IMG/VR virus record: IMGVR_UViG_3300035698_035310
Location: 248,001-312,000 of that record
Strand: one strand, 5' to 3'
DNA: 64,000 bases
The notes beneath the pieces are model-generated. The model was given only the letters and a program-made list of their open reading frames with translations. It searched no databases and was not told where the DNA came from. Positions 39,723-56,170 of the stretch are shown here, piece after piece. Position 1 is the first letter of the stretch, and every line of letters starts with the position of its first letter. The position numbers and the translations under genes were made by a program.

Positions 39723-40497
39723 TCCACTTACCAAATATTCCAACGACGAACAAGATAAAATAATTGAGGTGGCAAAACGGCATCACGCTCATACGTATCA
39801 TCGTGGAACTAACTTTGATTTATATAAAGAATATGATGCACCATATTGGGGTGACGGCGAATGTGAACACGGGAGTTGTAAACATTGTAAATATAATACC
39901 ATTGATGAAATACGTTCTAAAATGGTGTATGAAAATCATTATGACGACAACGAAGAACGATGTTATGAATATTCAGATGGAGCATTTTATGAATGGTTTA
40001 ACTCTATTATAACCAATGATGAAAAAATATGGATTGAAAATATAGATAAACCATTTGAAAAAGCAATTGTTTTTTATGACAATGAGGAATATTGGGAGAA
40101 GATTTACGACGATTATGTCGATTTAACATTGCTGAAATGGTTAAATGATAAAAATATAACGTATCATATCATAAAAGGATTGCTTGACTTTTCTGTAAAT
40201 CTGTATTATAAAAAAGAATCCATTTGGGATGATCATATAAGAGAATATAGACTTAGATTTGGTGACGCGACAACTATCGACTATATGTACGCAATATCAC
40301 ATTTAGGTTGGTATAGAATATCAATATATGATATGGCAATAAATGATGATGATATCAATGATGCTATAGAATGGATAGATGAAAATCACACCGGTATTGT
40401 TCTTAAATATTCCAACGTTGATGGTTATAGTAGCAATGATTATTTGTTTGAAAATGATGAAGATATAATGGGTTTAAAATTAAGATGGATGGAGTAA
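39712..40497 (+). CDS. hypothetical protein, F....D....KLRW family
   Basis: C-terminal FENDEDIMGLKLRW. Confidence 0.65.
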   Translation: MLIDPLTKYSNDEQDKIIEVAKRHHAHTYHRGTNFDLYKEYDAPYWGDGECEHGSCKHCKYNTIDEIRSKMVYENHYDDNEERCYEYSDGAFYEWFNSIITNDEKIWIENIDKPFEKAIVFYDNEEYWEKIYDDYVDLTLLKWLNDKNITYHIIKGLLDFSVNLYYKKESIWDDHIREYRLRFGDATTIDYMYAISHLGWYRISIYDMAINDDDINDAIEWIDENHTGIVLKYSNVDGYSSNDYLFENDEDIMGLKLRWME

Positions 40498-40501
40498 TAA
40501 A

Positions 40502-41353
40502 ATGTATAACACAAGAATAGCGCCATCACCAACGGGTGATATGCACCTTGGTACTGCTAGAACCGCTTATCATAATTTTTTGATGGCAAGGGCGTCCGGT
40601 GGAAAATTTATATTGCGCATCGACGATACTGATGCTGCACGCAGTAAACAGTCGCACGTCGACGTCATCCTTGAAACTATGGATTGGTTGGGTTTAGACT
40701 ACGACGAAATCGTTTATCAAAGTGATAGAAATGATCGTTATATGGAAGTAATCAAACAGATGGATGCAGATGATCTTGTTTGCGAGTTAGACAATGGTGC
40801 ATTTGGCACATTCATCGAAAGGGTTCCTGATGAATGGACAGATGAAATTGCTGGTGATATTATAGTGTCAGAGACCGATAGTGATATTAGTTCTAGTCTT
40901 ATATTAATGAAAAGTGATGGAACTCCTACTTATCATTTTGCATCAGTAATAGATGATATGGATTTCAATATTAATTATATTATCAGAGGACACGATCATA
41001 TATCTAATACACCAAAGCAACTCAATATTATGAACAACCTTGGTATGGTCATACCTAAGTTCGCACACGTGGGTCTTATTCACAAAGACGGTAAGAAATT
41101 ATCTAAACGTGACGGCGCAGCAAGTATGTTGCACTATCGCGATCAAGGATATGACCCTGATGCAATGCTCAATTTTTTATTGAATCTTGGGTGGGCACCA
41201 ACAAATCAAGGCAAGCAACATAAAATAATAGATCGTGATTTTGCTCTAGAGATTTTTATCAATGGTGGAAAATTGCGCAATCAATCAGCAAATATGGATT
41301 TAGCATTACTAGATTCATACAATAAAAAGTATAAGTATATCAAGAGGAAATAA
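40502..41353 (+). CDS. glutamyl-tRNA synthetase catalytic domain only (GluRS/GluQ-RS-like)
   Basis: RIAPSPTG.MHLG, RIDDTD, YQS.R, PTYHFA..IDD, RG.DH..NT, KLSKR; no anticodon-binding domain. Confidence 0.88.
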   Translation: MYNTRIAPSPTGDMHLGTARTAYHNFLMARASGGKFILRIDDTDAARSKQSHVDVILETMDWLGLDYDEIVYQSDRNDRYMEVIKQMDADDLVCELDNGAFGTFIERVPDEWTDEIAGDIIVSETDSDISSSLILMKSDGTPTYHFASVIDDMDFNINYIIRGHDHISNTPKQLNIMNNLGMVIPKFAHVGLIHKDGKKLSKRDGAASMLHYRDQGYDPDAMLNFLLNLGWAPTNQGKQHKIIDRDFALEIFINGGKLRNQSANMDLALLDSYNKKYKYIKRK

Positions 41354-41354
41354 A

Positions 41355-42191
41355 ATGAAGTACGATTTAGGTTCAGATTTACACGTAGATATTAATGCGG
41401 GTCGCATTGGTATGGTTAGATTTAAAGAAATGAAAAACGCAGGTAGTGATACTATAGTATTGGCAGGTGATATATCAAATGATCCAGAACTCACTGTTAA
41501 AGTATTAGCGATGGCGGCATCGGCATATGAAAATGTAATATTTGTGGATGGAAATCACGAACATTATAGTAACGGAAAATATGGGTTAGACGTTTCTGGT
41601 GCTATGGGATTCTTCAAAGAAGCAATAGATTTAATACCAAATGTCACATATTTATCTGGCGACAATAACGTTATTATTGACGACACGATGTTCGTTGGGG
41701 CTAATGCTTGGTATGATTTTAGAATGGCACCACCACAATACACGCCTGAAAAATGCAAAGAAGCATGGGAAACAAGCCTAAATGATTTTAGATTATCTAA
41801 TTTTGACGTAGAGCCAGAAGTATTGGCGGGTATTCAGTCTGCATTGATTGCGGATCAAGTATCCAAAGCGCAAGATAATGACGATGTTAAAAAAATAGTA
41901 GTTGTTACCCACACCGTGCCGAACACTAAAGGATTATTAGTTAAAAATAATCCATCGTGGGATATATTAAATGGCTGTTTTGGAAATTCAACGATGTCAA
42001 ACGTATGGCAAGTTGATACAAATCGCAAAATTATTCACGCAGTTTGTGGACATACACATTATCCAAATGATTTTGTCGACAACGATGGTATAAGATTTGT
42101 AATAAATCCAAGAGGTTATCATGGTGCTGAAAACGAACTTGGTGATAGATGGTTTTTAGTTCAAATGGATACATCAGACGAACGTATATAA
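41355..42191 (+). CDS. metallophosphoesterase
   Basis: SDLH, AGD, GNHEHY, THTVP, GHTH, NPRGY. Confidence 0.88.
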   Translation: MKYDLGSDLHVDINAGRIGMVRFKEMKNAGSDTIVLAGDISNDPELTVKVLAMAASAYENVIFVDGNHEHYSNGKYGLDVSGAMGFFKEAIDLIPNVTYLSGDNNVIIDDTMFVGANAWYDFRMAPPQYTPEKCKEAWETSLNDFRLSNFDVEPEVLAGIQSALIADQVSKAQDNDDVKKIVVVTHTVPNTKGLLVKNNPSWDILNGCFGNSTMSNVWQVDTNRKIIHAVCGHTHYPNDFVDNDGIRFVINPRGYHGAENELGDRWFLVQMDTSDERI

Positions 42192-42266
42192 AATAAAATA
42201 AACCGGTTGGATACAGTTCTAACCGGTTTTATTTTGATAAATACCTTTACATAAAGAGGTTTCATA

Positions 42267-43916
42267 ATGACAAAATATTACATGGGTGTATCCGCTTATC
42301 ATCACGATAGTGCTGCCGCGCTAATAGATGAACACGGAAACATTATTTGCGTTAGCCAAGAAGAACGTAGAACACTTATAAAGAATGACAAATCGTGGCC
42401 TGAAGAAAGTATTAATTTTTGTTTACGTCATGCAAAATCGCAACAGTTAGATACATCCGATATCACTTATGGATTTTATGAAAAACCATGGATTAAATTT
42501 ACACGTAGATTTTGTCAAAATCCTAAAGACACCGTTCGATATTTCAAAGAAGCATATAATACTACGAAAAAAATAAAAGGTTATAAAACCATAATGCATC
42601 ACGATGCTCATGCATTGGCTGGATGTGCAACATCGCCATTTGATAATTGTGTATATTTAATAGTTGATGCAGTGGGTGAATGGGAGACGACAACTTGGGG
42701 AACATTTAATAAAATCGATGGTATAAAAAAAGAAGGGTCTATTAGATATCCGCACAGTATAGGATTAATGTATTCATCATTTACGAGATGGTTGGGATTA
42801 AAACCAAACGAAGATGAATATATTGTAATGGGTGCGGCGGCTTTCGGTAAACCACGATTTGCTAATAAAATAAGAAAAGATTTTTTATCAGAAGTAACAG
42901 CATCGCCACATGGAATAGAATTTAAAAAAGGAGTTCATAACGGTATAGAGCAATACTACGGCGACGAAGTTCCCGTAAAAGATTGGTATGATTGGTGTGC
43001 GAGCATCCAGTATGTATGCGAACAAATGATGATAGATTTGGTTAGAATGTTAGAGCAACAATACGGCAAAGGTCATAATTTGGTATTAGGCGGCGGTGTA
43101 GCACTTAATTGTGTGGCAAATTCTAAAATAATGAAATCAACGCATGTGAAAGAATTATGGATATTACCAAGCCCCGGTGATAGTGGAAACGCGCTAGGGG
43201 CTGCTGCGCACGCCGCTGGCATCAATGATTTAGTTTGGGATAGTCCTTACCTTGGAATGGACATGGATAACGACAGTAACCCAACACAGGAACTAATACG
43301 CAACGTTGTAGCAAGATTGGATAATGGTGAAATTATAGGTTGGATACAAGGCAAAGAAGAATTTGGTCCGCGCTCTTTGGGTCATCGTTCATTGCTTGCC
43401 GATCCAAGATCATCGAAAATTAAAAATAAAATAAATTTAATAAAAAATCGACAAACATTTAGACCTTTCGCACCGTCTGTGTTAGAAGAAGAAACATATA
43501 TGTATTTTGACTTACCAAATGGCACAACAAGTAGATACATGCAATTTACAGCAAGAGTAAAAAATCCAAATATGTTACCTGCAATATGTCATATTGATGG
43601 AACCACCAGAGTTCAAACCGTACCTAAATCAACCGATCCATTTAGACGATTGCTTGAGCATTGGAAAGAAACCACTGGTTGTGCAGCATTGTTGAACACC
43701 AGTCTTAATATCAAAGGTCAACCATTAATGAGTAATCGAAAAGATGCTATTCAAATGTTATTAGATACACCAATGGATGCATTGGTTATAGGCAATAGAT
43801 TGTACTATAAAATAACAAAAGATGGATTAAGCGATGAACCCGGCGAAACGGTTCAAATAGCAGAATGTATAGATTACAGCCAAGGCGTTGATGACATGAT
43901 TAAAGGTCGTTTCTAA
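42267..43916 (+). CDS. carbamoyltransferase (NodU/CmcH family)
   Basis: HDSAAAL, QEER, HH.AHA, D.VGE, GGVALNC.AN, EFGPR.LG.RS.LA, FRPFAP, H.DG..R.QT, LLNTS.N. Confidence 0.93.
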   Translation: MTKYYMGVSAYHHDSAAALIDEHGNIICVSQEERRTLIKNDKSWPEESINFCLRHAKSQQLDTSDITYGFYEKPWIKFTRRFCQNPKDTVRYFKEAYNTTKKIKGYKTIMHHDAHALAGCATSPFDNCVYLIVDAVGEWETTTWGTFNKIDGIKKEGSIRYPHSIGLMYSSFTRWLGLKPNEDEYIVMGAAAFGKPRFANKIRKDFLSEVTASPHGIEFKKGVHNGIEQYYGDEVPVKDWYDWCASIQYVCEQMMIDLVRMLEQQYGKGHNLVLGGGVALNCVANSKIMKSTHVKELWILPSPGDSGNALGAAAHAAGINDLVWDSPYLGMDMDNDSNPTQELIRNVVARLDNGEIIGWIQGKEEFGPRSLGHRSLLADPRSSKIKNKINLIKNRQTFRPFAPSVLEEETYMYFDLPNGTTSRYMQFTARVKNPNMLPAICHIDGTTRVQTVPKSTDPFRRLLEHWKETTGCAALLNTSLNIKGQPLMSNRKDAIQMLLDTPMDALVIGNRLYYKITKDGLSDEPGETVQIAECIDYSQGVDDMIKGRF

Positions 43917-44938
43917 TGCACCCATATATGTTTGTTTTAAAACTTGCGACACTTAAAAAAATGGCTGATAAAAAAACGGTGTTGCGCGGTGCAGCGGTAG
44001 ATGGATGCATCAATTTATTTGAAGGTTTTCAATTAGCGTTTGATAAAAAACGAGTATTTCATGTTAAAAGTGTGCCATTGATTGAAATAGATGAAACAAT
44101 GTCACAAGATGAAATAACCGAAAATGGAACATACACTTGGGATATGTTTAAGGCGTTGGTTGGTTTATTAGAAAAAAATGATATTGATGAAGAAACGAAA
44201 AAAACGCTATTATATGAAGCGTGTGAACAATCGGGAATATTAGAATGGAATGGATTCTATCGTCCCATACTCATGAAAAATATTAAATGTGGGGTAATGC
44301 CAAAAACAATAAACGCGATATTGGATGAATTCGGCGGAACGGCATTGAAATATAAAATACCAATATGGAAAATACAACGAATACATCAAAATGGATTACA
44401 TGTAGGTGAAAAATATGTAGAACCATTATTAGATGGCAAACGAGCAATCACGATTGTAAATAAAGAATTAAAAATTGCTCAAATGTTTTCTGAAACTGGT
44501 GTATTAATAAAAACCCACAAAATAGATTTGGAACCATTGGCAGAATTGTCATATCAATTTCCAGCAAGTATGGTATTCGATGGTAATATAATCGATAGAA
44601 GTTATGGTGAACTTATGGATAAATCTGGAACCGATTCATATTATGCGATATATGACATTATTCCGTTATCTGATTTTGAAAAAAGTTATTGCCCAATGGC
44701 GCTAACAGATCGAAAAAATACATTAAATGACCTTAACCTCATTCTACGCGAAGAAACGAATGGGCAGATATATGTCCTACCGTCTTTACTGATGGATTTT
44801 TCTGCTGAAAATAAAGAAAAGAAACTAAAAGAAATTTCCGATGAAATAAAAAATGCCGGATTTAAAGCATCAGTTGTCAAAGATAGCAAATCATTCTACA
44901 CTTGTGCACGCGATTTATCATGGTTCAAAACACAATAA
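43916..44938 (+). CDS. ATP-dependent DNA ligase-like protein, apparently degenerate
   Basis: EPLLDGKR (motif I without the catalytic Lys), VFDG, YDI.PL..F, VVKD....Y...R...W.K; no OB domain. Confidence 0.65.
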   Translation: MHPYMFVLKLATLKKMADKKTVLRGAAVDGCINLFEGFQLAFDKKRVFHVKSVPLIEIDETMSQDEITENGTYTWDMFKALVGLLEKNDIDEETKKTLLYEACEQSGILEWNGFYRPILMKNIKCGVMPKTINAILDEFGGTALKYKIPIWKIQRIHQNGLHVGEKYVEPLLDGKRAITIVNKELKIAQMFSETGVLIKTHKIDLEPLAELSYQFPASMVFDGNIIDRSYGELMDKSGTDSYYAIYDIIPLSDFEKSYCPMALTDRKNTLNDLNLILREETNGQIYVLPSLLMDFSAENKEKKLKEISDEIKNAGFKASVVKDSKSFYTCARDLSWFKTQ

Positions 44939-45031
44939 TAAAAAATCTATACTTGGTTATTATTTAAGTTGACTTATAGTTGGCGATTCATTATTATGTA
45001 TCTACATTAATTAACTAGGAGATACAAAATA

Positions 45032-45301
45032 ATGGCTTTAGATTCATTAACACCAGATAACACAACCGCAATTAAACAAACTATTGAAGCAGGCGTTCAA
45101 GTATTGCGCGAAGTGGATACACTAAAAGAAGATATGAAAGTCTATGTAACAAATCTTTCCGAAGAATTGGACATCAAACCGGCAACCGTATCAAAGGCAA
45201 TTCGTCTAGCGCATAAAAACGAGAAAGATGATGCCATCAAACAAGCACAAGAAGAAATGACTGATGTAGAATTGATTCTACACGCTGCTGGAAAAATATA
45301 A
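45032..45301 (+). CDS. small dsDNA-binding protein (T4 DsbA-like)
   Basis: 89-aa helical protein, L.IKP....KAIR.AHK; replication cluster. Confidence 0.55.
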   Translation: MALDSLTPDNTTAIKQTIEAGVQVLREVDTLKEDMKVYVTNLSEELDIKPATVSKAIRLAHKNEKDDAIKQAQEEMTDVELILHAAGKI

Positions 45302-45306
45302 TAATC

Positions 45307-45368
45307 AGTGTTGGTTAGACACTTTAACTGTAACCAAAACTTTAAAGTCACTCGGGACATAAACCGAG
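45307..45368 (+). promoter_or_regulatory. putative translational operator of the DNA polymerase gene
   Basis: Potential pseudoknot 45307-45335 and a 5-bp/8-nt-loop hairpin CTCGG-GACATAAA-CCGAG abutting the SD. Confidence 0.5.
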
Positions 45369-45378
45369 AAGGATAAGA

Positions 45379-48117
45379 ATGACATACGTAGACGCAATAA
45401 AAGTTAAAGATACCATTTATATCGCAGAACGCGATGCTAATGGAAAAAGGATAACACAACAATATCCAGCAACATATACACTATATAAGAAACAGCCACA
45501 TGGCGAACATACTTCTATCTATGGTGATTCGTTAACGAAATACACATTCGGAACATATCAAGACCATAGAAATGCGGTGAATGGTGCGCAACCTAGCACA
45601 TTATTCGAACATGATATTAATCCAGTTTTCAGTTTTCTTGAAGAACACTATTCTAATGCTCCATTGCCTATGTTGCATGTTGCATTTTTTGATATTGAGG
45701 TCGACTTTGATCCTAATATTGGTTTCTCAAGTCCTGAAGACCCATATTGTGCTGTGAATGCTATATCGGTGCATCAATCTTGGACGGGGCAAAACCATAC
45801 GGTTGTTTTGAAACCAAAAACCATAAGAAAAACACTTATGATTAATGGCAAAGAAGTGACTAAACTAGTTCCGTTAACAGAAGAAGAAGCAGTAGAAATA
45901 TGCAATAAATTCGAAAATACCATATTATGTAGAGATGAAATCGAATTATATAATAAATTTTTCGAATTGATATATGATGCGGATATTTTAAGTGGATGGA
46001 ACAGCACCGGATTTGATATACCATATTTGGTTAGACGATTAGAAAAAATCAAACATACCGAAAAAAATAAGAAGTTTTGTTTATGGGATCAAAAACCCAG
46101 AAAAAGAAATTTTGAAAAATTCGGTAAAGAGCAATTCACATATGATTTGTTTGGTCGTGTTCATTTGGACTATCTTGATTTGTATCAAAAACATACGTAT
46201 CACGAAATGCACAGTTATAGTCTAGATGCTGTTGGCGAGTATGAAGTTAAAGAACGCAAAGTAGCATATGCTGGAAGTTTGGATATGCTATATAAGGCGG
46301 ATTTTGAAAAATTTATCGAATATAACCGTCAAGACGTTATGGTGTTAGTTAAAATCGATAAGAAAAACAAATTCATCGAGTTATCCAATAACCTTGCGCA
46401 CGAAATGACTGTAACATTGCAGACTACACTTGGTTCTGTTGCGTTGATAGAATCAGCCATATGTAAGGAAATACATTCTCAGGGGCTGATAGCACCAAGT
46501 AAGAAAAAACCTTCTGGTGAGTCAACGTCGGTGGCTGGTGCCTATGTTGCTACCCCTATTAAGGGTTTGCATAATTGGGTTGGTAGCGTAGATATCAATT
46601 CGTTATATCCTTCGGTTATTCGAGCACTCAATATAAGCCCTGAAACAATAGTTGGTCAGATCAGATTAACAGAGACAATGACACACATTTCAGATTATTT
46701 GAATGAAAAATCAACCAATACGTTAGCAGAAGCGTGGGGGGATTTCTTTGGTGTTCATGAATACAATAAATTGATGAGAAAATCTCCTGATGAGAAAATC
46801 ATTGTAGATTTAGAAGATGGGTCGGCATTAGAACAATCTGTCGAAGATTGGTTTAATTCTATACACGATGAAGATTCAAGTATGTGCGTAAGTAGTAATG
46901 GGACATTATTCAGAATAGACAAAAAAGGCATTATTCCAGGTTTGCTTGAACGTTGGTATAATGAACGCGTTATTATTCGCAAAGAAGCATCGGATATGTA
47001 TAAGCAAGTAGAAAATATGGAAGATGGTCCCGAAAAGGATGAACTTAATAAACAAATAGCATTCCGTGATCAACGACAATTGATTAAAAAGATTTTGCTT
47101 AACAGTTTGTATGGTGCGTTACTTAATCCATATTGTAGATTTTTTGATCAACGTATGGGACAGTCAGTTACATTAACTGGGCGTTGTATTACCAAACACA
47201 TGATGTCAAAAATGAATGAAATATTTACCGGTGAATATGATCATGAAGGTGAATCGATAATTTATGGCGATACTGATTCTGCATATTTCTCCGCGTATCC
47301 AATTTTCAAAGATATAAAAGATTTTGACTGGTCTGCGGATAATATAATTGAATTATATGATACCGTATCAAGTCAAATGAATGAATCGTTTCCGGGTTAT
47401 ATGGTAGATGCGTTTCATACATCATTAGAAAACGGAAAGATAATTGAAGCAGGGCGCGAAGTTATTGCACAGAAAGGTGTATTCATTAAAAAGAAACGTT
47501 ATGCTTTATTATGTAATGATATTGAAGGTAGACGTTTTGATCAAGGTGATGAACCAGGAAAAATGAAAGCGATGGGCGTTGAACTTAAACGTTCTGATAC
47601 ACCCGCAAGCATTCAAGTGTTTCTAAAAGACACATTAATGATGGCACTATCTGGTTCCAGCGAAGAAGAAATTAGATTATACATTAAAGATTTCCGTGAA
47701 GATTTTAGATCATGGGATGGATGGAATAAAGGCGCACCAAAACGCGTCAACAATCTTACAGAAAAAGTCGATAAAGAAAAAACGTTGGGAATGAGAACCA
47801 GCATGGCAGGACATCAACGTGCATCAATGGCATGGAATGATTTAAGAAAGAAATTCAATGACCATTATAGCATGGAAATACAAGATGGATTCAAAGTGGT
47901 TGTATGTAAACTGAAAAAAAATCCATTAGGAATAACAAGTGTCGCATATCCAGTTGATCAGGAACACTTACCAGAGTGGTTTAAAGAGTTGCCGTTTGAT
48001 CACGATTTGATGGAAGAAGGCATGATAGATAAAAAAATAGAAAATATTCTTGGTGTACTTAAGTGGAAACTTAAACGCGCTGAAGATGATACAACATGGG
48101 ATAATATTTTTTCATAA
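45379..48117 (+). CDS. family B DNA polymerase (T4 gp43-like)
   Basis: FDIE, GWN..GFD.PY, YN..D, SVDINSLYPS, K..LNSLYG, YGDTDS, KKRY. Confidence 0.97.
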   Translation: MTYVDAIKVKDTIYIAERDANGKRITQQYPATYTLYKKQPHGEHTSIYGDSLTKYTFGTYQDHRNAVNGAQPSTLFEHDINPVFSFLEEHYSNAPLPMLHVAFFDIEVDFDPNIGFSSPEDPYCAVNAISVHQSWTGQNHTVVLKPKTIRKTLMINGKEVTKLVPLTEEEAVEICNKFENTILCRDEIELYNKFFELIYDADILSGWNSTGFDIPYLVRRLEKIKHTEKNKKFCLWDQKPRKRNFEKFGKEQFTYDLFGRVHLDYLDLYQKHTYHEMHSYSLDAVGEYEVKERKVAYAGSLDMLYKADFEKFIEYNRQDVMVLVKIDKKNKFIELSNNLAHEMTVTLQTTLGSVALIESAICKEIHSQGLIAPSKKKPSGESTSVAGAYVATPIKGLHNWVGSVDINSLYPSVIRALNISPETIVGQIRLTETMTHISDYLNEKSTNTLAEAWGDFFGVHEYNKLMRKSPDEKIIVDLEDGSALEQSVEDWFNSIHDEDSSMCVSSNGTLFRIDKKGIIPGLLERWYNERVIIRKEASDMYKQVENMEDGPEKDELNKQIAFRDQRQLIKKILLNSLYGALLNPYCRFFDQRMGQSVTLTGRCITKHMMSKMNEIFTGEYDHEGESIIYGDTDSAYFSAYPIFKDIKDFDWSADNIIELYDTVSSQMNESFPGYMVDAFHTSLENGKIIEAGREVIAQKGVFIKKKRYALLCNDIEGRRFDQGDEPGKMKAMGVELKRSDTPASIQVFLKDTLMMALSGSSEEEIRLYIKDFREDFRSWDGWNKGAPKRVNNLTEKVDKEKTLGMRTSMAGHQRASMAWNDLRKKFNDHYSMEIQDGFKVVVCKLKKNPLGITSVAYPVDQEHLPEWFKELPFDHDLMEEGMIDKKIENILGVLKWKLKRAEDDTTWDNIFS

Positions 48118-48185
48118 TAAAAGAATAATATTGCAATAATAACAACAATGATTTATATTATATAAACACTTAGAGGAATAGAATA

Positions 48186-48977
48186 ATGATACTTAACTAC
48201 TTACGTGATATTGTAAAATACACAACTAAACTTGGTGCGAACTCAGTTAAAATATCCGGCGACAACGGCGTTGTAACAGTTGAAGCATGCGACGAGACTA
48301 ACAAAACGGTTGTAATCAAAGGCACCCTAATAAAACCATCACCGGATTTAGAAGGCATTTGCGGATTGAGCGATTTGGAATGGCTCACGAGTTATGTAAA
48401 TGCTTATAAACACAAAGACGATGTTGCGACAGTTATTCGCAAAGAAAAGACATTCAATCAACAAATGAATGATAGCGATGGAAATGCATTGGTCGACGAG
48501 AACGGCGAAGTGAAAACAGAATCAATAACAAAAAACATGATTGAAGAAATTCATTTTGCACGTGGCACACAAATGAAGAATCAATATCGGGTTATGGATA
48601 CCAGATTGTTACCGGAACAACCGAAGTTTGGCGGTTTGCCGTGGGCTATTGAAATTGAGCCAACCAAACAAGCCATTGATTTACTATCTACGCAATCAGG
48701 ATTTGGCGTTGAAACAGAGTTCGGTGTTGTCACCGACGAGAATACATTATATTTGACATTTGGCAGTTCTGCTGTTATCGAATTTGCATATGATGTTGAA
48801 GGCACACTTGATAAGCCATGGAGATGGGAAACTAAACGAGTATTGGATATATTAAAACTATCTAATGATGCTGAATGCAAAATGGGATTTTCAGACAAAG
48901 GTGCCATGCAAATAACATTAAATTCTGGATTGGCGGAATATAATTATATAGTTCCCGCAAAAGCAAAAAGTAATTAA
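48186..48977 (+). CDS. sliding clamp-like protein
   Basis: Follows the polymerase; size and C-terminal GA..I...SGLA.Y.Y..PA. Confidence 0.6.
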   Translation: MILNYLRDIVKYTTKLGANSVKISGDNGVVTVEACDETNKTVVIKGTLIKPSPDLEGICGLSDLEWLTSYVNAYKHKDDVATVIRKEKTFNQQMNDSDGNALVDENGEVKTESITKNMIEEIHFARGTQMKNQYRVMDTRLLPEQPKFGGLPWAIEIEPTKQAIDLLSTQSGFGVETEFGVVTDENTLYLTFGSSAVIEFAYDVEGTLDKPWRWETKRVLDILKLSNDAECKMGFSDKGAMQITLNSGLAEYNYIVPAKAKSN

Positions 48978-55391: not shown

Positions 55392-55679
55392 ATGTATCAA
55401 GAGAAAAAACTCGAAAGAAGAAGACGTGACTACTTAAGAATGAAAGAACGTGCTAGACACGTTCAAGCCCGTTGGTGGGATACCCATCACACTGATCCTG
55501 ACTTACATGACGCTGCAAGTAAGTTAGCCAACACTTTAAAATTATGTTCATGTTCATTGTGTGGAAACCCACGCCGTGATAATGTTTATGGCGATACATT
55601 AACGATGCAAGAATTAAAAGCACTGGATGATTCAAAAGATCAGTTAAAATGTTTTTTAGAAGAAACGCTTGACATATAA
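55392..55679 (+). CDS. small basic Zn-ribbon-like protein (CSC..CGNPR)
   Basis: Arg-rich N-terminus, CSCSLCGNPRR...T.QE; structured leader 55340-55380. Confidence 0.7.
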   Translation: MYQEKKLERRRRDYLRMKERARHVQARWWDTHHTDPDLHDAASKLANTLKLCSCSLCGNPRRDNVYGDTLTMQELKALDDSKDQLKCFLEETLDI

Positions 55680-55744
55680 ATATCATGTGTTATATTGTAT
55701 AAATAAGTTTAACGAATTAACCACTATTCAAGAAAGGAAATATT

Positions 55745-56170
55745 ATGTTGTAGATTAATACTGCTACCAAAGACGAAACCTTTGATCCCATGATGGATCA
55801 AACATTGCGCATGTATGCGATTGAGCGCGGTGATTTGGATATGACAAGAGGGAAGTGTTCTTCTCAAACAGGTCATGCATACAAACTTCTAACAAAAAAT
55901 GTGGTAGAGAATAACCCAACACTATCGAACGAATACTTCGATGATGGCATGGGAACTAATGTCACACTTAAATCCAAAAATCTAAGTCAACTTGAACGTG
56001 CCTATGACAATGCATTGGACGCGGGGCTTCCTTGTGTTTTAATCACTGACGAAGGGCATATAATGCCGCCACACTTCGATGGTGAACCTATTGTCACGGT
56101 TATAGGCATTGGCCCATGTAGGCGTGCCGAAGTTCATCACATCACCAAAAAATTTAACTGTGTAAAATAA
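55745..56170 (+). CDS. peptidyl-tRNA hydrolase (Pth2 type) with in-frame TAG at codon 3
   Basis: R.DL.M..GK...Q..HA, V.LK, GLP...I.D.G, TV.GIGP; SD AAGGA precedes ATG TTG TAG ATT... in frame with track ORF 55790. Confidence 0.8.

Follow-up and report, generated by a model that had tools for sequence, protein, structure and literature searches.

A leader stop codon conserved in the predicted peptidyl-tRNA hydrolase gene of huge phages, and its probable decoding by phage suppressor tRNAs

The predicted peptidyl-tRNA hydrolase gene (pth2) of a phage genome of approximately 570 kb from a salt-lake metagenome opens with a two-codon leader and an in-frame UAG stop codon, and comparison with its homologues makes it probable that pth2 is gated by programmed decoding of this stop, for which a phage-encoded suppressor tRNA is the likeliest agent; Pth2 synthesis would then be tied to the level of suppression. 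The stretch of DNA analysed, referred to here as the window, is 64,000 nucleotides of that genome (IMG/VR record IMGVR_UViG_3300035698_035310); its genes are all on the plus strand, its GC content is 37%, it uses the standard code, and no close DNA relatives of it were found among GenBank phages.

The preliminary description of the locus, made from the letters of the sequence, reported AAGGA, six bases of spacing and ATG TTG TAG, followed by 12 in-frame sense codons before the Pth2 domain, and this reading was confirmed base for base (Table 1). The codons after TAG start with ATT AAT, end with CCC and are in frame with the pth2 orf, and the combination of a Shine-Dalgarno sequence, AUG, one sense codon and a stop is the layout of a bar-like minigene. 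When the whole 64-kb window was searched for a Shine-Dalgarno sequence and ATG with at most 12 codons before a stop and an in-frame orf of at least 80 codons after it, pth2 was the only case; the architecture, being unique in the window and recurrent in most homologues, is beyond chance. An independent ENA assembly and the contigs of four salt-lake runs have the leader TAG unchanged, and it therefore is not an assembly slip.

The 126-residue orf is predicted from its sequence to be a PTH2 peptidyl-tRNA hydrolase with an intact domain. Its residues 7-123 match positions 2-113 of the 115 in profile PF01981 with 66.6 bits against a cut-off of 23, and the alignment to a solved archaeal Pth2 (2zv3_A) covers chain residues 2-109, first strand included (E values in Table 1). 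Other solved structures that were aligned to it are 1rlk, 1rzw, 1xty and 1q7s. The insertion H-I-M-P-P-H-F-D-G is conserved in this clade of Pth2 proteins.

Table 1. Coordinates and counts of features of the pth2 locus in the window and of homologous loci (cited by L numbers).
Feature	Location	Strand	Remarks
Sigma-70-like promoter	55669..55696	+	TTGACA 55669-55674, 16-base spacer, TG-extended TATATT 55691-55696; 11 of 12 matches
TATAAATA motif	55698..55705	+	Probably just AT-rich promoter DNA; not enriched in window
Shine-Dalgarno AAGGA	55734..55738	+	Core with the same spacing in nearly all homologous leaders
Leader mini-orf ATG TTG TAG (fMet-Leu-stop)	55745..55753	+	ATG 55745-55747, TTG 55748-55750, TAG 55751-55753; identical ATG TTG TAG ATT in L057, L063, L065, L076, L081, L091
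Putative UAG recoding site, next base A	55751..55753	+	58 distinct homologues with in-frame leader stop
12 sense codons from stop to first Met	55754..55789	+	INTATKDETFDP; N-terminal tail if read through
8-bp hairpin with ATG ATG in loop	55781..55802	+	Lineage-specific; about 1% of shuffles do as well
ATG ATG, possible internal start without Shine-Dalgarno	55790..55795	+	Gene callers pick 55793
PTH2 domain	55808..56158	+	PF01981, E 3e-18; 2zv3, E 2e-9
Whole putatively recoded pth2	55745..56170	+	Leader, UAG, tail, domain, TAA stop 56168-56170; from sequence and homologue comparison
Leader type, in-frame TAG			52 distinct sequences
Leader type, in-frame TGA			3 distinct sequences
Leader type, in-frame TAA			3 distinct sequences
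Leader stop one base behind Pth2 frame			19 distinct sequences
Ordinary start			13 distinct sequences
Leader class not assigned			1 distinct sequence
Four-base site UAGC			12 distinct loci
Four-base site UAGG			2 distinct loci
Four-base site UAGA			1 distinct locus
Four-base site UGAC			1 distinct locus
Four-base site UGAA			1 distinct locus
Four-base site UAAG			1 distinct locus, plus L121
GCUA tRNA genes	L059:68-146, L062:3544-3622, L099:1882-1959, L102:2821-2898, L110:345-422		Beside UAGC leaders
UCUA tRNA, 8-base loop	L097:895-969		Beside UAGA leader
Motif plus hairpin of out-of-frame class, examples	L093:2749-2815, L120:3958-4024, L035:2889-2955

When IMG/VR, JGI metagenomes and GTDB genomes were scanned with profiles, 115 loci were collected, among which 93 domain sequences are distinct, and a frame-aware script and a tree were used to assign leader classes to 90 distinct ingroup sequences (clade support 100), which have identities of 35-70%, range from 21 to 66% in GC content and are located mostly on phage contigs of 100-600 kb. 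The absence of an upstream in-frame TAG from homologues had been named in the preliminary description as grounds for abandoning its proposal, and this is not what the survey found: 58 of the 90 have a Shine-Dalgarno sequence, ATG, one to eight codons (usually two to seven) and a stop in frame with the domain, and 19 have the stop one base off. The first five relatives from IMG/VR (42-50% identity) already displayed a Shine-Dalgarno sequence, ATG, one to four codons and an in-frame TAG with no intervening ATG. Of 48 distinct contexts, 25 have a two-codon leader, and in 45 the leader does not exceed seven codons. Judged by these comparisons, a stop-bearing leader is kept in about 75 distinct homologues and is not due to chance. 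Of the 13 ordinary starts, 12 belong to a single nested clade that is marked by an N-terminal extension, and ordinary starts are also found in more distant phage Pth2 genes (XacN1, Xoo-sp13, RAS14, L146 and L151). From this distribution, the recoded leader looks ancestral to the clade, kept while its type switched many times (17-18 switches on the tree). The leaders of L069/L078 could be assigned to no class. The sole match among 185,579 species genomes (L121; Pseudomonas nitroreducens, NZ_JACHLI010000001.1, 39972-48355) has an out-of-frame (UAAG) pth2 on a 450-kb contig that is possibly a huge phage or a phage-derived element in a bacterial assembly.

Two members of the clade are cultured jumbo phages. 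In Phosso, the leader ATG AAG TAT TAG precedes the Pth2 domain, and in Atu_ph07, a six-codon leader ends in TGA. The deposited coding sequences start at a methionine within the first strand of the domain (Atu_ph07 AUZ95035.1, L007:4037-4369; Phosso XYS97424.1, L008:4037-4369) and are likely to be mis-annotations, the leader stop having concealed the true 5′ end and led to truncation. A tractable experimental system is offered by Atu_ph07 on Agrobacterium tumefaciens C58.

No ATG separates the stop from the first domain strand in 51 of the 58 in-frame loci, and in 46 the intervening stretch is free of ATG, GTG and TTG alike; since most homologues are without a start codon after the stop, the dependence of Pth2 on readthrough is well supported. 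The pattern expected of programmed readthrough, a stop within a conserved frame and no later start, is found family-wide; the window differs in having an ATG, without a Shine-Dalgarno sequence, 12 codons past the leader stop. In one subclade (leader M-L/I-T/S-N-S-F-L, 24-codon spacer), many changes on both sides of TAG are synonymous only, in a single frame, as in coding sequence. Five relatives (L043, L044, L045, L048 and L119), of which L043-L045 are the closest to the window, have a second in-frame TAG within the conserved domain, following a D-P or T-D-P motif, at a position where the window has threonine. Orfs neighbouring pth2 in L043 and L045 may hold in-frame TAGs as well, and a wider use of TAG as sense is possible there. 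The base on the 3′ side of the leader stop is A in 27 cases, G in 18, C in three and T in none, and the chance of finding no T is about 5e-4 if first-base usage of the same orfs is taken as the expectation and relatedness is ignored.

The type of leader stop corresponds to the type of tRNA encoded nearby. ARAGORN was run on all loci, with 3-4 kb fetched per locus. A tRNA of any kind is present at 26 of the 52 distinct TAG loci, and it includes a tRNA with anticodon CUA at 25 of these 26, in many cases on the leader's strand and 20-100 bases upstream of it, and a tRNA with anticodon UCA at none. The TGA leader of L109 has a tRNA-UCA 27 bases upstream, and Atu_ph07, also with a TGA leader, is reported to have a single suppressor tRNA, with anticodon UCA (PMC6102473). 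No tRNA is located near any of the 13 loci with an ordinary start. When IMG/VR loci were picked only by a tRNA-CUA-like pattern, a Pth2 homologue was present in the stretch fetched for eight of 80. By blastn, the bodies of these tRNAs are similar to phage tRNA-Lys, a weak hint as to the residue that may be inserted. When the tRNA-CUA of L024 was compared by blastn with GenBank phages to seek the suppressor of Phosso, the only matches were to generic tRNA-Lys and tRNA-Asn.

Because the leader stop covaries with the adjacent suppressor tRNA, decoding by the phage's own tRNA is indicated rather than passive sensing of RF1 failure. The preliminary description had proposed a switch in which efficient RF1 allows only a dipeptide to be made and Pth is produced when UAG termination fails. 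The readthrough dependence of that proposal stands (58 of 90, mostly with no later start), and the production of Pth upon failed termination survives in modified form; failure of RF1 as the trigger is unsupported. Two special types of tRNA were considered and rejected. An initiator-type tRNA that starts translation at UAG does not fit the paired acceptor ends, the absence of three consecutive G-C pairs from the anticodon stem or the variable distance from Shine-Dalgarno sequence to TAG; as for a pyrrolysine tRNA, the Pyl label given by ARAGORN merely reflects the CUA anticodon, and the D-arms are ordinary.

In the window itself, neither ARAGORN nor Rfam detected a tRNA, nor was one detected in the 10 kb past either end, so that 84 of about 570 kb have been covered; the window has no Rfam match of any RNA family. 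A tRNA-CUA of the window's contig was absent among the matches listed by pattern scans of IMG/VR with restrictive patterns. From the relatives, we infer both that the phage has such a tRNA and that this tRNA decodes the UAG.

Other RNA genes are also found around pth2. Genes for tmRNA lie from a few hundred bases to 2 kb away (L015:718-1227, L017:2410-2759, L075, L088), and together with the tRNA genes they suggest a ribosome-rescue gene neighbourhood. Odd tRNA-like genes adjoin pth2 in L006 (3352-3429), L012 (1944-2020), L043 (5025-5105) and L045 (5118-5198), to which ARAGORN assigns anticodons of four bases (gtaa, ggaa) or two (tc). A relative of 436 kb (IMGVR_UViG_3300034073_003340; L252, L169) apparently has two tRNA-CUA-like genes approximately 200 kb apart, one of them near pth2.

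The leaders of the form ATG TTR TAA (L050-L053 and L068, with GC contents of 21-25%) have no tRNA-UUA in their flanks. TAA is also the main gene terminator at these loci, and a dedicated tRNA fits TAA leaders poorly, because an ochre suppressor would read through most of the phage's own gene ends.

About a fifth of the relatives belong to the one-base-out-of-frame (+1) class, in which a Shine-Dalgarno sequence, ATG and 1-16 codons are followed by a stop, with one additional base between this stop and the resumption of the Pth2 frame, so that a +1 or four-base decoding event is required (e.g. L059:211-277, L062:3892-3967, L095:3955-4015, L099:2110-2212, L102:2923-2989, L110:519-600). The window, being of the plain in-frame type, is not a member. 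Slippage of the kind used by prfB was rejected as unlikely for this class, because re-pairing in the +1 frame is impossible for the codons that would occupy the P site before the stop (TCG, CAG, AAC, CAC, TTG, CGC, AGA). A tRNA accompanies five of the UAGC leaders, and in each case it is the only one, a class-I molecule of 78-79 bases with GCUA in the loop; ARAGORN labels these tRNAs Ser(GCU), yet they are without the long variable arm of a real tRNA-Ser, and their anticodon stems are odd. The GCUA tRNAs and the UCUA tRNA, the latter with an enlarged loop, are candidate natural quadruplet decoders. At 16-40 bases after the leader stop, members of the class have a conserved motif (ACGG-N3/4-GRCCGCA), and at a fixed distance past it a hairpin of 4-6 bp, the stem sequences of which vary by locus (TCGCC/GGCGA, CCTCA/TGAGG, CTGAAC/GTTCAG, TCTAC/GTAGA); it was found by a hairpin search of each sequence, having been missed by RNAalifold owing to the alignment register. 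Motif and hairpin together may be a 3′ recoding stimulator. No common downstream hairpin emerged when homologues of the in-frame class were compared. As far as sequences can tell, the out-of-frame class shows that what has been conserved is the reliance of pth2 on some unusual form of decoding.

There is perhaps an even chance that in a large clade of huge phages the pth2 leader is one half of a co-evolving tRNA-leader module, serving as an obligatory decoding test for the phages' amber, opal, possibly ochre and, in about a fifth of members, four-base (UAGC, UAGA, UAGG, UGAC, UGAA, UAAG) tRNAs; such a module would link reprogrammed termination to peptidyl-tRNA recycling.

Upstream of the leader, the sigma-70-like promoter that had been described at TTGACA 55669 is borne out by its score, and in relatives, promoters of the TTGACA type directly precede either the leader or, where a tRNA gene comes before the leader, that gene. 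The preliminary description had also proposed a T4-type late promoter, at 55698; the motif TATAAATA is present there, but that reading is unsupported because the motif is not enriched in the 64-kb window, where seven copies were found and 11.6 are expected. Downstream, the earlier statement that the ATG at 55790 is without a Shine-Dalgarno sequence agrees with the absence of any such core within the 18 bases before it. The in-frame ATG ATG after the leader stop sets the window apart from nearly all relatives, and the closest ones have N-E or G-D in its place and no methionine. The hairpin around it consists of a perfect 8-bp stem (TTTGATCC / GGATCAAA) and a 6-base loop, and is absent from relatives. 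RNA structure of the leader in the window was considered and rejected, its fold being no better than that of shuffles (z -0.5).

These features bear on two alternatives to decoding by a phage tRNA, neither of them likely. The mini-orf might be an upstream orf from which ribosomes go on to reinitiate 36 bases further on, or a relic of an ancestral gate, with Pth2 started internally at 55790 or 55793. The in-frame ATG ATG would yield a complete domain (a start at 55790 includes the whole of it, given that 2zv3 aligns from its second residue), the loop that presents it belongs to an 8-bp hairpin specific to the lineage, it contains the start chosen by gene callers, and in four relatives (L056, L075, L085, L094) an ATG directly follows the leader TAG. 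This reading is nonetheless doubtful: no Shine-Dalgarno sequence precedes 55790, the closest relatives have no methionine there, ATG TTG TAG ATT matches distant relatives base for base as would not be expected of a relic, and family-wide the stop is in frame or exactly one base off, with no downstream ATG at 51 of 58 in-frame loci. A start that overlaps the leader stop or is within a few bases of it, as coupling of termination to reinitiation would have, is absent from the window, where the distance to the next ATG is 36 bases and no Shine-Dalgarno sequence precedes it; most relatives are startless, and only four have TAG ATG. Alternatively, the UAG might be read by near-cognate host tRNAs at a basal level that rises when RF1 is limiting or inhibited, in which case no dedicated tRNA would be required and Pth2 would report termination capacity. 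By comparison with E. coli, the leader stop, which is at codon 3 and never has T after it, may be in a weak-termination context; no suppressor tRNA is found in the 84 kb inspected, the 3-4 kb fetched per locus are without a tRNA for approximately half of the TAG leaders, and some very AT-rich relatives have TAA leaders although an ochre suppressor would come at a high cost to them. Basal readthrough is still an unlikely explanation, because the stop matches the adjacent tRNA wherever one is present (TAG with CUA, TGA with UCA, UAGC with GCUA, UAGA with UCUA), because simple readthrough would not serve the out-of-frame class, and because the TAGs inside the domain suggest efficient decoding and not rare leakage.

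The two remaining alternatives are far less credible. Recoding of TAG by phages with suppressor tRNAs is known (bioRxiv 10.1101/2021.08.26.457843), and possible in-frame TAGs in orfs next to pth2 of L043-L045 would suit an alternative code in which TAG is sense throughout the genome and the TAG of pth2 is one of many. It is very improbable that such a code applies here: the window is densely filled with long orfs in the standard code, TAG ends nine of about 100 of them (about 9%), pth2 is the only in-frame leader-stop case, and in relatives the stop is at the very start of one gene and may also be TGA, TAA or a four-base site. Genome-wide recoding of TAG is thus largely refuted for the window, which does not show the features of a reassigned code. 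Two of the nine TAG-ended genes in the window are followed, after 3 and 6 codons, by a gene in the same frame (48983-49627/49637-50119 and 57003-57344/57363-57569); an amber suppressor would fuse these pairs, and two of nine is not above chance. That the TAG arose by sequencing error or nonsense mutation, or that the gene is decaying, is hardly conceivable, and was refuted by the identical sequence in independent assemblies and four runs, the presence of the feature in about 75 distinct homologues and the intact domain.

According to the favoured mechanism of programmed decoding, ribosomes would load at the strong Shine-Dalgarno sequence, start at the ATG at 55745, read UUG and pause on UAG as the third codon. 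Where RF1 wins, fMet-Leu would be released or the dipeptidyl-tRNA would drop off, and most attempts would end at this point. Where UAG is read as sense, translation would continue in frame through the 12-residue tail to a complete Pth2. By analogy with the relatives, the decoder is most likely a phage-encoded amber suppressor tRNA with anticodon CUA, and the output of Pth2 would follow how strongly stop codons are suppressed during infection. Nonsense suppression generates non-stop complexes, and two-codon minigenes load Pth (PMC8012679); drop-off of dipeptidyl-tRNA averages about 10% in E. coli (PMC10192219), and early elongation and two-codon minigenes are the main sources of dropped peptidyl-tRNA (PMC8012679; PMC10192219). 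Speculatively, the purpose of the gate might be a feed-forward supply of the recycling enzyme as suppression raises drop-off and non-stop stalling, perhaps together with control of timing or dose. A ribosome-recycling enzyme of which the synthesis depends on suppression offers a testable logic.

In literature and full-text searches, neither a recoded pth2 leader nor a target of these tRNAs was found to have been described before. Suppressor tRNAs of jumbo phages have been reported without an identifiable target, and the authors describing XacN1 found none for its suppressor tRNAs in a search that covered only annotated gene ends (PMC5852040); a two-codon leader would therefore have been missed. 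The pth2 leader offers a conserved target, which, if the proposal is true, is the first conserved natural one for the unexplained suppressor tRNAs of jumbo phages with a standard code. The pairs of four-base sites and tRNAs, if they are truly natural quadruplet codon-anticodon pairs, are of interest to genetic-code engineering.

Among known systems, the code switching of phages (Borges et al., bioRxiv 10.1101/2021.08.26.457843) likewise employs phage suppressor tRNAs for in-frame TAG or TGA codons, with a proposed regulatory role; the preprint makes no mention of Pth. In code switching, however, numerous late and lysis genes contain scattered stops, and reading with the standard code makes coding density collapse, whereas the window phage uses the standard code and has one stop in the first few codons of one gene; the target of the pth2 system is a translation-recycling enzyme, and the type of stop switches with the tRNA. 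The prfB gene of RF2 also has an early in-frame stop at which termination has to fail for a translation factor to be synthesized. The preliminary description had drawn this analogy, which fails on mechanism: prfB uses a +1 frameshift at UGA with a slippery CUU U and, three bases upstream, a stimulator resembling a Shine-Dalgarno sequence, and its product reads the stop, closing a feedback loop, whereas pth2 of the window has no slippery site and no frameshift, and its product is a predicted PTH2 hydrolase, not the release factor that reads the stop. In viral programmed readthrough, as for the A1 protein of Q-beta at UGA and gag-pol of MuLV at UAG, some ribosomes similarly decode a stop to make an extended protein; those stops end a functional upstream protein and are read by host tRNAs, whereas the pth2 leaders encode a di- to octapeptide upstream, all of the functional protein is downstream, and a matched virus tRNA is implicated. 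The minigenes of lambda bar (AUG AUA UAA) resemble the window in being two-codon orfs led by a Shine-Dalgarno sequence and ended by a stop; such orfs give rise to drop-off of dipeptidyl-tRNA and load Pth (PMC8012679). The bar minigenes are free-standing, whereas the minigene of the window forms the 5′ end of a pth gene, with which it is in frame. The engineered quadruplet tRNAs for UAGN codons (PMC4764823) are matched in the out-of-frame relatives by the pairing of UAGC and UAGA with GCUA and UCUA in unusual or enlarged loops; the engineered tRNAs are laboratory constructs, whereas each candidate pair of the relatives consists of a phage tRNA and a site that occur naturally.
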